From positions 30,001 through 62,000 of the forward strand of contig NW_008806282.1 of the NCBI RefSeq assembly GCF_000400465.1: a DNA stretch of 32,000 nucleotides. The letters run 5' to 3'. Below the pieces are notes generated by a model, which worked only from the letters and a program-made list of their open reading frames with translations, did not search any database and was not told the origin of the DNA. Below are positions 2,145-9,272 of this stretch, piece by piece. The position numbers were made by a program, and so were the translations under genes. The DNA is from Wallemia ichthyophaga EXF-994 (Eukaryota; Fungi; Basidiomycota). The stretch's first letter is position 1. Every line of letters begins with the position of its first letter.

Positions 2145-4145
2145 ATGGCATTATCTTTGAAGGAGATCGTTGCTGAAAAAACGAGTCTTGCCAAAGAAGC
2201 CATGGAGGCTAATCAAACGCTGGGCGATAAGCCAGCTTCGGCAAACTTGGAGAGATCTACGCTGTAAACAGACTCATCTCGGGAAGGCTCTGGAGATACG
2301 ATGCCACCGCCTGATAAAAGTTTATTATCTCTTCTTCAGCAGCAAAAACAAGTGATGGCATCCAATAGCAATAAATACGATGCTAATAGTATGACCGGGA
2401 CATCTATTCATCCCCGCTCTAGATTTTATAACAACTATAGGCAGTAATTGCAGGGCTACAACCAGTCGAATAACATTTATCAATCGACAGAAGAAAGTCA
2501 ATTTGACGCATACATTCAGCAGTTGCCATGTTTCGTAGCACCAGAGAATTATGTTAAGGCGAAATGGGAACAGACCCTGTCTATATCAAAAATTTGCGCA
2601 CTTTATTTATTGAAGAAATCAGCTAAAAGTTTGCACAATCTTCCAGCCCAGAAATGAGAGAGACGGAAGTCAACAGTGATTTCACCGCTCCGGCAACTAG
2701 CACCGCGAGACCAAGTCTTATATACCAGAGTCCAAATTACTATACACTGTGGAAGACAACTACTCAAGCTCTTTGTGGACAGCTTGACATGAAGTCAAGT
2801 GTTGAAGAATTGCTGCAGGGCGTGAACCTCAAACCATCGGCCTCTGAGGAGGTATACTTTACCCAGATTGAAGGTGATATGTGTAATGACAAGGACAATA
2901 AGATGAGCACAGACGAGATGACTAAGTCTGAAATTGTTCCTGACGCGGAAGCGCAAGATGAAGACAAACAAATGGAAAAAATTAAAGTTGACTCAGGTGA
3001 AAATCAAGCTGCAAAGAAGAACCAAATGATAGTAGCGACTCTGAGAAAACATTAAGGGACAATAAACACTTTTAAGACCAGTCAAGTGAGGATGTGAAGC
3101 CTGACGTGAAGCCTTGCAGTACAGAACTCGAACAAGAACACAGCAAAGAAGCAGAAAACATACTGAGATCACTACGCATTCTTATTTTTACTCAACATCC
3201 ACCTAACGAGAAGACAACAATGAAATGCTTTGGAAATTTTGAGAACTGGTCCGTTTCTTTAACCACTCAACAACTTATTTAACATTAGAACAGTATCGCA
3301 ATCAACAGCTTTTCTAAAAATAAAGAGATATTCCACATTACTAACGCGCTGGTAATTATGGGAACATTAGCTGATATTTATGGATCATTTGGTCAGATTG
3401 GCATTAGCTTGCTCACTACAGTTGTATTTGATGACGTGAGTCTTATTTGAGCAAGCACCGGATTTACTGACAAAACCAGCTCGTCAATAATGACGAATGG
3501 CAAGAAACACTCTCAGCTGTCGCACGCAGAATAGAAGAAAAATAATCAACCTCAATACAAGTTATTGTTTGCTCTAGCTTTTTTTTTTCACTCGAATTGG
3601 TACAAGATATGGTTTCGGAAGTACCATTAACGGTACTTGGATAAATCAAACCAATGGTCCTTAGAGGTGTTGACGATTTTCTTTTCGAAAGACACTTAGC
3701 TCCTGACGATAATATTGAAAAAGACTTGGCGGAATTATCTGAAACATCACCATTCATAGTGTACTGCGCTTTTGACAAGCACGCTGAGAAACAATATGAA
3801 AAAATCAAGCCATTGCAGAGTTCATCCTGCCTGGTGAAAAAGCACATACTGGAAGATACTCAGCTTATTGAGGAGTTTAATCGTGGCGAGAAGAAGATAC
3901 TGATAACTACGTCGATAATGTCAAGATCCAAGGCAGTGGAAGAATCACCGCTAGTCATCGTTCAATCGGCTCCGCATAACCTGGAACAGTATTCGAATAT
4001 CGTTGGGAGGCCAATATTCTCTAATCACAAAGTCAAATGCATCATAGTTTCTAGTTCAGAAAAGGAGACAAACATTATAAAGACTTACAGGCAGAATTTT
4101 CAACTATTACTGAGCATTCCGAATGATTGCAAGTATCTTTACTAA
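2145..4145 (+). pseudogene. Degenerate DEAD-box (eIF4A/Dbp5-like fold) pseudo-helicase with in-frame TAA stops: pseudogene or recoded gene
   Basis: The C-terminal RecA domain is recognisable (FIVYC; EEFNRGEKKILITTSIMSR; LVIVQSAPHNLEQYSNIVGR). Splicing introns 3249-3293 (GTCCGT..AACAG) and 3436-3479 (GTGAGT..TACTGAC..CCAG) gives an N-terminal RecA-like segment (LVIMGTLADI..TTVVFDD|LVNN; QVIVCSS). In-frame TAA occurs at 3543 and 3642. Further TAAs (2265, 2445, 3073) and frame changes (about 2500-2650 and about 3000) lie upstream. Confidence 0.7.
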
Positions 4146-4272: not shown

Positions 4273-5464
4273 TTATTCAGCCTTGACTTTAATGGCTGCT
4301 GTTGGAGAGAAGTTGTGTGGGCGAGCAGAGAAACCAATCTCGAGAGAACGGCCACCATAGATGTAACCGTTGAACTTTTCGATTGCCACACTAGCGGCGG
4401 CAGTTGAGTAGAATTCAACGAGACCAACACCACGACTACGTTGAGTGCGAACATCCATCAAGATCTCAGCCGTCTTGACGTCACCAGTAGTTTCAAACAA
4501 GTCGACTAAATCTTCGTTTGTTGTTGAGTATGGCAAGTTTTTGGTAACAATTTGAGGGTTTGGAGCGGCAGCAGCAGGTACAGGACCAGGACCAGCAGGT
4601 GCTCTTCTGGCAGCTTGATATGGAGTTCTTGCTGGTCTTGGTGAGTTTGCAAACTTGTCCTCACGGACTTCTATTGGTCTACCGTAGAATTCGTAGTTGT
4701 GGTACAACTCGATTGCGTTTTGTGCGTCTTCTCTTGAAGAGAAAGAAACGATACCGTTACCCTTTGACTTTCCATCAGGGAAGAATTGAACATCGGCTCT
4801 AACTACGTGACCAGCTTGTCTGAAGAGGTCTTTGAGGTCTTGCCAGCCAACTTGGAAAGGCAACTGGAAAGGTGTGAGGGGAGATTCAGGGGAGGAAAAG
4901 CCGGAGCTAAAGCCATAAGACTCACGTTACCGATGAACAATTGAGTACCTGGAGCTGCAACTTGGGCAGGACCAGCACCATAAGCACCACGGGTGAATTG
5001 CTGGGTACGTGAAGGGGTTGGGTTAGCACCGAATCTAGCCTCTTGTTCTCTGTCCTATAAGGTGTGAGGCTAACTGAGGTATATTCACGTGTGGCTTACC
5101 TCTCTAACGAAGACTGGTCTACCAAGAAGATCTCTGTCTGAGTAAGACTCGATTGCGATTTGAGCTGATTCTGGGGAAGTGAATTCAACGATACTGAGAA
5201 TTGTGAGCGAGGGTGAGAGCGGATAAAGACTCAAAACTCACCCGCAACCCTTTGAAAGACCATTTGGAGTGATCAGTACCTCAGCGTATGCTACTTCAAG
5301 GGATTCTATGGGGTTTGTGAGCACGCAGTCCATCCAACAGCCAGCACCAACGACTCACGTCCCTCTGCGTTGTCTTCAAAGAACGCCTTCAAGTCCTCGT
5401 CCTTGACATCGTAGCTGAGATTTCCAACGTAGACTCTGTTCTCCCTCTTTGAGAATTCTGCCAT
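4273..5464 (-). CDS. GBP2: Three-RRM RNA-binding protein (Gbp2/Hrb1-like)
   Basis: ATG at 5464 (MAEFSKRENRVYVGNLSYDVK). Introns 5306-5358, 5194-5241, 5055-5099 and 4864-4925 are all GT-AG. It has three RRMs with SKGCGIVEF..GRPVFVREDRE, SKGNGIV..GRPIEVREDKF and SRGVGLVEF..YGGRSLEIGF. Confidence 0.85.
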
Positions 5465-5646
5465 CACACCTAAAATTTCGAAGTTGTGGTCAGAGAGGAT
5501 AGCAGCGCGAATTATGATTTATAAAAAAATAAGTTTAGAAGGGATGTTTTAGTGGCGTGATTAGATGCTCTAGCGGGGCTGTAGATTCATATTCCATTTG
5601 GACCTGTTCCCCAGGCTTAACTCATCTCCCCAACCACCAACAACAA

Positions 5647-7009: not shown

Positions 7010-9272
7010 CTATTTATTTTGACGACAATTTCCCAAAGTAAAGACATCTAACGTTATCCCTCGGGTCATCCTCTTCAAACTCGTCAATGATTCCAAGATT
7101 GGCGTGAAGATAATGTATATTGCCCCAACCATCAACCATGCTAGGCCGATACTTACCCAAGCCTTAAATCCCGCTCTTGGCAAGATGTAGCCTGTGCCAT
7201 AGAGTGCGAAAGTTACTGTGAATATCATAACTGTAACCCAGAGAAGCGAAGAAAACGCAGCCAGCTTTATCGATCGTGTCAAATATTCAATGTCAGCTGA
7301 ACTGAGATTCCCTTGACTAGTATTGTGTGAGTCTAGATCGCTAAGCTCAGGTGTGGCTTCCTCTACATCCTTGAAGGATTTCTCATCTGCTTGAAGAGTT
7401 TCGACGACAACTTCTTGTTCTGGGGGTGCAACATGTGCTTCTGACTCTTTCACTGCCTTCCTGCCAGTGTCTTTAGTCTTTTCAAAGTCATGATTATCAG
7501 GGGAAATCAGGGATCCAACGACTGAAATAATTATAGAAAGCCCGAATGATACTGTGTTCCCTGCAAGCATCGGGAAGTCCTCTATCGATAATTTTGTTAG
7601 CCGTCTTTAATCAAATTACGCAGCGACGTACGTCCGGTTGTTGTCTTATCGACAACGCCATTATTTAGCTTATATGCCGTGACTATCCATGCAATAATAC
7701 CGAGAGGAAGTGAGATGAGAGTTGCACCTATGCAAGCAACTTTATTGGCTTTACTCCACATAATGCAGCAAATCAAAGGAGCAACGGCAGGACATAGAAT
7801 AATGCCCATCAGCTCATACAGCCACCCCATTCCGATACCGATATAGTAAAATATAATTCCAAGCACGGCCTGGCAGATACCAAAACCAGCAACGCTAGCG
7901 TGTGAGACGAATAATGTCTGCTTATCAGTTGCGTTCGGCTTTACTCTATTGAAGACATCGTAAGTTACAAGTGTCGAGACTGCGACTAGCTCAGCGGAGG
8001 CTGCGGCAAAGAAGGTGAGATGAAGGCAGCTTTGTGAATATTTTCACTCACATGCCGCTGTGGATGCAAGGAAGAGCATGATTAATACTGCATTCGCACC
8101 CGAATTTCCCATCAATGCTGATGCAGCTGCTGATGCAGGTAGGCCAGCAGTCACTTCTGCCGATGACAAAGAAGAAATCGCATCCGAGTTCTTGAGTGCC
8201 GCGCCAGCTAAACCGAGACATGTTGCCAAAGCAAATGGAATGGGATACCAACACATACTGCCTATAACAAATGATTTCGTGATTGAACGCGGTTGTGATG
8301 CCACTGCTCTGTTGACATATGCTTGATCTAAGTACACTGTGCCGAAGTTACCGCATAGGTTGATGAAAAAAAACGTGATGCCTCCTAATGAGCGAAACGT
8401 CAGGTACGAACCATCCGCATTACCTTCGACAGGATGACGTGAAGCCTGATCGACCAGCATATCGTAAAGACGATCAAGCGAGCCAACTTCAGGAGCTGAT
8501 GTGTAGGTGTAGAAGCAAAAGCCTATAATGACGCCGTAGAGGACGATGGTGTGTAGGTAATCTGCAATAAGTGATGCCTTTAGACCCCCAATCATGATGT
8601 AGATAGAAACACTCAGTGGTGTAAGCCATACTGCCGCCATGACAGGAACATTTGTGAGACTATGGAGAGTATCGGAAATACCGACAATAAGCATCGCACT
8701 GACTATCAAATTGCAGGAAAGCGCGAAGCTGAGAAACACATAGTGGCCTATCTTGCCCCATCGTGCACCTGCTATTTCGACGAAACTATGCGCGTAAGGC
8801 CATCGTATTCTCATACTACTTGCCAAGACTGAGAAGACTAAAATTTGCAAGCAGGCACCTAAGCAAACTGTTTAAGTGGGTTCTTGCGTATATGCCAGCA
8901 TTTCTCACCAGTTGCGTAGCTGTAAGAGCCTAGCAATCCGTAGGAGTAAGTTTTAGAAGTTGACGTACTATGCTTTGTTTAATGACTGAGGACACTATTC
9001 GAATGGAAACTCACAGCAAAGTAGCACTCCAGCACCATGCAGAGACAACTCCGCTTGAGATTAAACCGGTAGGCACAGATCTACTGGCAGAGTTGAACTC
9101 TTCAGCCGTTTGGACCTTGTTCCCATAGCGCCTCTGTAATGCGTTTATAATAAGCATCAACGCACTAAATCCTGCAAGGCGTCAGGATAAGACGTAGATA
9201 TAAGTCATACTTACCAAAGCCTAGAATTAGCAAGACACAATAGCCATTGAGTTGTGGTAATGGCGGCTCCAT
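7010..9272 (-). CDS. DUR3: Urea/polyamine transporter, sodium:solute symporter family
   Basis: MEPPLPQLNGY..EEFNSASRSVPTGLISSGVVSAWCWSATLL; GNFGTVYLDQAYVNRA; SAELVAVSTLVTYDVF; GMGWLYELMG. Five introns (9172-9214, 8968-9014, 8859-8908, 8001-8051, 7582-7631) give a continuous frame. Confidence 0.9.

Follow-up and report, generated by a model that had tools for sequence, protein, structure and literature searches.

DEAD-box proteins of the eIF4A/Fal1 type (eIF4A-I, eIF4A-III) are about 400 amino acids (aa) long and carry the Walker A, DEAD, SAT, and HRIGRxGR motifs. Genes whose reading frames are broken by stop codons have several described counterparts: unitary pseudogenes that carry several null alleles, ascomycete genes with premature stop codons (PSC genes) that are restored by RNA editing, and fungal genes mutated by repeat-induced point mutation (RIP). 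Here, we compare with these systems a helicase-like gene on the forward strand of a 32,000-nucleotide (nt) stretch of the halophilic basidiomycete Wallemia ichthyophaga EXF-994 (the window; GCF_000400465.1, contig NW_008806282.1, positions 30,001 to 62,000). A sequence-only reading had described positions 2145–4145 of the window as a catalytically dead DEAD-box derivative with intact introns that is broken only by TAA codons. Judged by sequence comparison, 2654–4145 is best read as a unitary pseudogene of an eIF4A-derived pseudo-helicase of about 380–450 aa with three introns (probability roughly 0.8).

The locus resembles unitary pseudogenes with several null alleles in most respects. It is single copy, lies at a largely conserved position, has an intact counterpart in a relative, and carries a fixed nonsense codon. 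It also shows polymorphic stops, frameshifts, splice losses, and a lowered GC content, and part of it behaves as if neutral. It differs from such pseudogenes downstream of the first stop, where a neutral model would give proportionally fewer nonsense and more missense changes than are seen. On this reading, the gene is a unitary pseudogene of the ordinary kind that was inactivated recently, and the nonsense excess is its one small statistical oddity. A species-specific pseudogene of this kind requires no new mechanism, and recoding, editing, and RIP can be set aside.

TAA triplets stand at 2265, 2445, 2555, 2624, 3053, 3073, 3543, and 3642, and all those listed by the sequence-only reading occur where it placed them. 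The stops at 3543 and 3642 (hereafter the core stops) lie within exon 4 (Table 1). The claim of the sequence-only reading that no plausible intron removes them also held up. An exhaustive search of in-frame GT..AG pairs returned none shorter than 147 nt that removes either core stop, and all pairs that would remove both are at least 261 nt long, have poor donors, and would cut conserved coding sequence.

The comparison set comprised seven NCBI strain assemblies (L002–L007; 2019 population study PMC6738226) and the Logan contigs L008–L010. L010 does not extend as far as the stops, and both it and L009, which are short, are genomic rather than transcript sequences. The window is 99.8% identical to W. 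ichthyophaga GCA_004918315.1 and 97.8% identical to GCA_004918335.1. The TAA at 3543 is present in 9/9 other W. ichthyophaga sequences that span the position. Assembly error, which had been offered as one way to account for the stops, is refuted by these nine further independent sequences; in all, the stops are found in ten independent sequences, de novo Logan contigs among them.

A 53-kb Logan contig of a Wallemia relative (L001; about 75% nucleotide identity, with synteny on the RRM side) holds the only other homologue. Its C-terminal domain is open (237-aa open reading frame [ORF] P0001), and both core positions hold Ser codons, TCG at 3543 and TCA at 3642. The sequence-only reading had taken the stops for former Gln codons and had proposed to look for CAA at these sites in relatives. 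The Ser codons speak against this, and so does the Asn codon that the relative has at 3073; CAA is aligned at 2265 alone, where the alignment is weak. An origin of the core stops by CAA>TAA (CpA>TpA) change fails on the same ground, since the step from TCG or TCA/TCC to TAA is a C>A transversion. The observation that every stop is TAA is correct for the window but not for the species, because other strains carry TAG at 3987 and TGA at 2445. Spectrum-matched shuffles make 61% of new stops TAA, and the all-TAA pattern exceeds chance only weakly. On the pseudogene reading, the stops are ordinary terminators that call for no special decoding.

The strength of past constraint is visible in exon 4. 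Between the window and the relative, the ratio of nonsynonymous to synonymous substitution rates (dN/dS) is 0.11–0.12, with a saturated synonymous rate (dS) of about 1.2 and 71–73% amino-acid identity. A dN/dS below 1 had been proposed as a check, and the value of about 0.11 in the C-terminal helicase domain bears it out. Such a low ratio between species implies that the gene was functional for long and was lost recently; by these sequence comparisons, the loss would be recent relative to the split from the relative.

We propose that the ATPase motifs were already gone from the ancestral protein, which nevertheless remained under strong purifying selection, presumably as a noncatalytic binding or scaffold protein. 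Conversion of a Ser codon to TAA at 3543 would have removed motif III and the entire RecA2 domain. Selection would then have relaxed, and the haplotypes would each have gained their own stops, frameshifts, and splice-signal changes. At most a truncated, probably nonfunctional product would still be made. We infer the order of these events, the exact splicing of the linker described below, and the loss of function of the truncated product.

The gene is disrupted in every W. ichthyophaga sequence examined. Across the ten sequences, the lesions amount to seven polymorphic nonsense sites, two 1-bp deletions, one 4-bp insertion, and changes in splice signals, distributed over two haplogroups, A and B, that share the 3543 stop (Table 1). 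Depending on the site, the stops replaced Ser, Leu, or Gln, and the frame downstream of 3543 was open in the inferred ancestor of the species. GC content at the locus is 0.40, the lowest in the window (median 0.45). Upstream of 3543, the within-species changes comprise 7 synonymous, 14 missense, and 1 nonsense, against 5.5, 15.4, and 1.1 expected, and this part of the gene fits neutrality within the species. The locus is a compact case of many null alleles segregating together.

Two further features of the haplotypes were observed. L005–L007 carry a 21-bp tandem duplication at 2706 that repeats RPSLIYQ. L005 and L009 look like recombinants of haplogroups A and B.

All NCBI pipelines call an N-terminal ORF at the locus, as would be expected if the gene had undergone fission and the N-terminal product of 183–253 aa ending at 3543 kept its function. 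In a variant of this scenario, RecA2 may be made separately from ATG 3612 or 3654, by re-initiation or from an internal promoter; the window haplotype indeed retains an intact 163-aa Helicase_C ORF (3654–4145). Missense changes are under-represented after the first stop and the exon 4 indels between haplogroups are in frame, which would also suit a C-terminal product that is still in use. That same ORF, however, holds four stops in haplogroup B and another in L006 and L007 and is thus disrupted in the majority of haplotypes, the part preceding 3543 evolves neutrally, and one strain is stopped at codon 5. Moreover, long-range re-initiation is rare in eukaryotes. We consider fission improbable.

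Several observations weigh against simple pseudogene decay, and most concern the region downstream of 3543. There, the 26 within-species substitutions divide into 9 synonymous, 11 missense, and 6 nonsense changes, against 6.4, 17.9, and 1.8 expected from shuffles that keep each base change, giving a nonsense excess (P = 0.006) and a missense deficit (P = 0.004). In exon 4, the haplogroups are set apart by two indels, each of 3 bp. In addition, the deep divergence of the haplogroups is confined to this locus and reaches 3–4% within 3001–4000, compared with 0–0.4% in the flanking Het-C and RRM genes (1–2000 and 4273–4863). These anomalies could reflect lingering constraint, selection on the stops, or an older local genealogy. 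Mean divergence across the W. ichthyophaga genome is 0.32%, and linkage disequilibrium decays over about 1.3 kb (PMC6738226), so that deep local ancestry at a locus free of constraint is enough to account for 3–4%, although this is not proven.

The nonsense excess could instead mean that stops were favored. A harmful C-terminal fragment arising from leaky termination or re-initiation, for example, might have been truncated independently in both haplogroups. The stops after 3543 arose by differing mutation types (C>A, T>A, and C>T), and 6/9 stop-creating substitutions in any forward frame lie in the ancestral frame, as selection for truncation would have it. On the other side, the test is post hoc, the locus having been chosen for its stops, and without the 3642 stop a rough estimate gives P ~0.03; several stops share one haplotype where one would do; and nonsense changes are not in excess upstream of 3543. 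Selected loss is accordingly quite improbable in our assessment. Over the whole gene, context-matched shuffles give 3.1 nonsense changes expected against 7 observed (P = 0.025), and the effect persists. We rate chance as the most likely cause of the excess. That the nonsense excess and missense deficit are real, through selected repeated truncation of a harmful RecA2 fragment or through a gene-specific tolerance of UAA under which a constrained protein would still be produced, is unlikely; if true, a basidiomycete would in either case be losing or decoding a gene in an unusual way.

Two other sources of the excess were examined and rejected. Templated mutation from neighboring bases is not indicated, as adjacency is not enriched (26 observed, 22.9 expected) and the context-matched P of 0.025 persists. 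Nor is there support for an ORF concealed in one of the other frames, sense or antisense, the 127-aa antisense ORF at 3464–3847 among them: these frames hold 6–15 stops each and show no signal of constraint.

The sequence-only reading had also raised expression through stop recoding or RNA editing, and read-through of UAA would likewise allow the full-length protein still to be made. The fixed TAA at 3543 in a conserved ORF recalls the PSC genes of Fusarium and Neurospora (PUK1, AMD1, CHE1), which are edited from adenosine to inosine (A-to-I). The open ancestral frame downstream of this stop, the shortage of missense changes, and the near-uniformity of the stops as TAA would all suit such decoding. 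The known restorative editing in fungi, however, occurs in sexual-stage ascomycetes and converts UAG to UGG (PMC5496914, PMC10962958), giving Trp in the PSC genes (PMC11169179, PMC5496914); the window gene belongs to the Wallemiomycetes, within the basidiomycetes, and its UAA derives from Ser, a residue that A-to-I editing cannot produce from UAA. Ancestral residues vary from stop to stop and one stop is TAG. The stops are haplotype specific beyond 3543, L006 and L007 carry a frameshift in the same exon, and splice signals have been lost. TAA is also the normal terminator of neighboring genes in the window, Het-C and the RRM gene being among those whose last exon closes with it, and UAA is generally the least leaky stop codon. 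Continued production of the full-length protein is thus very unlikely.

RIP-like or other hypermutation would draw on haplogroup B, where three of the four extra stops (3792, 3963, and 3987) are C>T changes at CpA, the TAA/TAG-from-CAA/CAG pattern of RIP-mutated fungal genes, and on the local divergence of 3–4% beside the genome-wide mean. As criteria for RIP, we took TpA/ApT above about 0.89 and (CpA+TpG)/(ApC+GpT) below about 1.03 relative to the flanks, dominance of C>T/G>A changes, and a repeated template. The two indices, which the sequence-only reading had proposed to compute, are 0.77 and 1.33 and lie at the window background. Within-species transitions and transversions number 24:24, and the stops of the window are C>A changes from Ser. 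No second copy or paralogue was found in protein homologue searches, and only 1.67% of the W. ichthyophaga genome consists of repeats (PMC3849046), which also counts against RIP. The gene thus differs from RIP-mutated genes in having no duplicate, no dinucleotide signature, no transition excess, and core stops made by transversion. Together with assembly artefact, hypermutation is scarcely credible as the explanation. Of the corresponding proposal in the sequence-only reading, the recently inactivated, catalytically dead DEAD-box derivative stands, given a dN/dS of 0.11 and a gene broken in all W. ichthyophaga sequences examined, whereas the CpA>TpA, RIP-like cause does not stand for the core stops, given the C>A changes and the background indices.

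We next consider what kind of protein was lost. Pfam Helicase_C (PF00271) matches 3654–4145 with 37.3 bits and P0001 with 34.5 bits, above the cut-off of 23.5 bits. Sequence searches of the PDB, with a single sequence and with a two-species profile, returned eIF4A-I, eIF4A-III, and yeast eIF4A as top matches, with E values between 1e-4 and 5e-6 and about 20–25% identity; the alignments are colinear over the stretch from roughly motif II/III up to and including motif VI. The claim that both RecA-like domains are present is therefore secure for RecA2 and holds only partly for RecA1. In the RecA1 half, only the motif II–III stretch aligns to eIF4A; Pfam DEAD (PF00270) matches neither the N-terminal half nor the 299-aa core even when E values of up to 1 are allowed. 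The AlphaFold model built for the N-terminal half (predicted local distance difference test score, 33) is uninformative on a RecA1 fold.

The degenerate state of the motifs, as claimed, is evident from the alignments to eIF4A. Walker A is missing, and the conceptual protein lacks a GKT altogether. By our comparison, motif II reads FDDL (window) or FYDL (relative). Motif III is CSS in the window and CSR in the relative, where eIF4A-I has SAT, and motif VI is SNIVGRPIF and SNVIGRPIL, respectively, against HRIGRGGRFG of eIF4A-I. Because this degeneracy is common to both species, the protein would have been catalytically dead before they split, and we describe the predicted product as a catalytically dead, eIF4A-like DEAD-box derivative. 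It shares with eIF4A/Fal1 proteins the best PDB matches, the RecA2 domain, a similar length, and residue positions that agree once the linker is spliced out. It differs from them in lacking Walker A, DEAD, SAT, and HRIGRxGR as well as a Pfam DEAD match, in being broken in W. ichthyophaga, and in having no other homologues in the protein collections searched.

Protein searches of collections of 5.8 billion and 1.84 billion sequences recovered only W. ichthyophaga models and P0001, and a full HMMER scan of 1.84 billion representative proteins with P0001 returned no real relative. The pseudo-helicase is previously undescribed and so far restricted to W. ichthyophaga and one Wallemia relative. An orphan-like Wallemia pseudo-helicase that was strongly conserved despite its lost ATPase motifs is a candidate noncatalytic RNA-binding or scaffold protein.

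The features of the locus are collected in Table 1.

Table 1. Features of the helicase-like locus and lesions of its haplotypes (window coordinates)
Feature	Position	Strand	Basis or distribution
TATA-like box TATATAAA	1975–1982	+	Read from the letters; candidate by sequence
Leader or degenerate N-terminal extension	2145–2653	+	Strain comparison; weak homology to L001
Exon 1, with Q-motif region remnant DMKSSVEELLQGVNLKPSA	2654–2873	+	NCBI models P0002–P0009; comparison with L001
Linker at the expected place of Walker A	2874–3124	+	Frameshift and TAAs at 3053 and 3073
Exon 2, with motif Ia remnant RILIFTQHPPNEKT (compare ALVLAPTRELA)	3125–3248	+	Sequence comparison
Intron, 45 nt, GTCCGT..ACAG, containing TAA and TAG	3249–3293	+	Canonical
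Exon 3, with motif Ib and II remnants (IMGTLAD; VVFDD joined to LV)	3294–3435	+	Sequence comparison
Intron, 44 nt, GTGAGT..TACTGAC..CAG	3436–3479	+	Canonical; conserved in L001; used by NCBI models
Exon 4, with motif III remnant, whole RecA2/Helicase_C, and motif VI remnant	3480–4145	+	Pfam and PDB matches
Premature TAA, fixed in W. ichthyophaga	3543–3545	+	Identical in L002–L009; TCG (Ser) in L001
Run of ten T	3572–3581	+	T9 in L006 and L007 (frameshift); T7 in haplogroup B and L001
Second premature TAA, haplogroup A only	3642–3644	+	TCC (Ser) in haplogroup B; TCA (Ser) in L001
Haplogroup A, lesion beyond 3543	3642		TAA; window, L003, L006, L007
Haplogroup B, lesions	3696, 3792		TAA from TTA (3696) and from CAA (3792), with TCC at 3642; L002, L004, L005, L008, L009
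Haplogroup B, further lesions	3963, 3987		TAA at 3963 (not in L005); TAG at 3987 (from CAG)
Lesions of L006 and L007	4056		TAA (from TCA); also T10>T9 frameshift
Stop at codon 5	2666		TAA; L008
1-bp deletion			L002
21-bp duplication	2706		L005–L007

The 5′ boundary of the gene was placed differently from the sequence-only reading, which had started it at ATG 2145. The leader between this ATG and exon 1 has 44% amino-acid identity to the relative with a dN/dS of 0.40. It contains the TAAs at 2265 and 2445, both fixed as stops in the species (2445 is TGA in L006), a 4-bp insertion after 2473 in L002 and L004, and a GT donor at 2589–2590 that is kept in haplogroup B, reads GTGAGT in the relative, and has become AA in the window haplotype. 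The two fixed stops, the indel polymorphism, and the lost donor argue against ATG 2145, and the supported start is ATG 2654, which all NCBI models use. The TATA-like box reported earlier is present as a sequence candidate, about 170 nt upstream of 2145 and about 670 nt upstream of 2654.

Exon 1 has 68% amino-acid identity to the relative and a dN/dS of 0.30. It resembles what we take to be the eIF4A Q-motif region, DMNL..LLRGI..GFEKPSAIQ. The two canonical introns that had been proposed, at 3249–3293 and 3436–3479, are both canonical in sequence, and the natural terminator of exon 4 is the TAA at 4143–4145. In haplogroup B, an AC>TA change at 3466–3467 alters the branch-site-like CTGAC of the second of these introns. 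In the first, T>A changes at 3280–3288 convert the stops (TAA to AAA, TAG to AAG) in L002 and L004, with only the first site changed in L008. These changes open the reading frame across all 45 nt of the intron, which NCBI models P0003 and P0007 translate as coding sequence.

The linker interrupts the frame by stops or a frameshift in both the window and the relative, at differing places. The window and the relative share, in homologous places, the donor AAG|GTGA and the acceptor YAG|AACTCGA. Together these would define a frame-preserving long intron of 251 nt in the window and 309 nt in the relative, and splicing it out clears both species of all mid-gene stops. Another donor that looks conserved, GTGAA, would give introns of 128 nt (window) and 195 nt (relative). 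Whichever intron is removed, the ORF of the relative is open throughout (421 or 459 aa), and exactly two internal stops remain in the window. With the long intron, residue numbering also agrees with eIF4A-I (query 180 to chain residue 182). The linker was thus probably spliced out whole (2874–3124) or in part (2997–3124). The first 96 nt of the candidate long intron (2873–2968) are still weakly coding-like, with a dN/dS of 0.49, and the NCBI models excise 3032–3081 instead.

Two side observations concern this region. A 12-bp imperfect tandem repeat, GTGAAGCCTGAC followed by GTGAAGCCTTGC, occupies 3092–3115 just 5′ of the candidate acceptor in all W. ichthyophaga sequences. The relative has in-frame TAAs of its own, at 4893–4895 in the leader (GAA in W. 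ichthyophaga) and at 5484–5486 and 5493–5495 in the linker; the linker pair vanishes if the conserved long intron is used.

Existing annotation of the locus is uneven. NCBI models (2654–3892) are 66, 199, 250, 253, and 265 aa long, and their introns differ by strain. Every one of them, that of the reference strain EXF-994 included, terminates at the 3543 TAA. This inconsistency looks like gene prediction forced around pseudogene lesions, and, with models ranging from 66 to 265 aa, the locus deserves a pseudogene flag. The W. ichthyophaga transcriptome paper, whose RNA-seq is public (PMC3849046), does not list the identifier of this gene in its supplements.

Neighboring ORFs in the window encode Het-C, an RRM protein, PPP5, Rax2, Ric8, and a GH3 enzyme. 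The 32,000 nt contain no tRNA genes, which within this stretch speaks against a suppressor tRNA, and the region gave no Rfam match to a structured RNA at E up to 1. In the relative, a sodium:solute symporter block (7012–9272 in the window) is inverted at 278–2659 of the L001 contig and takes the position of Het-C on the upstream side of the helicase-like gene, with the inversion breakpoint near the 5′ end of that gene.

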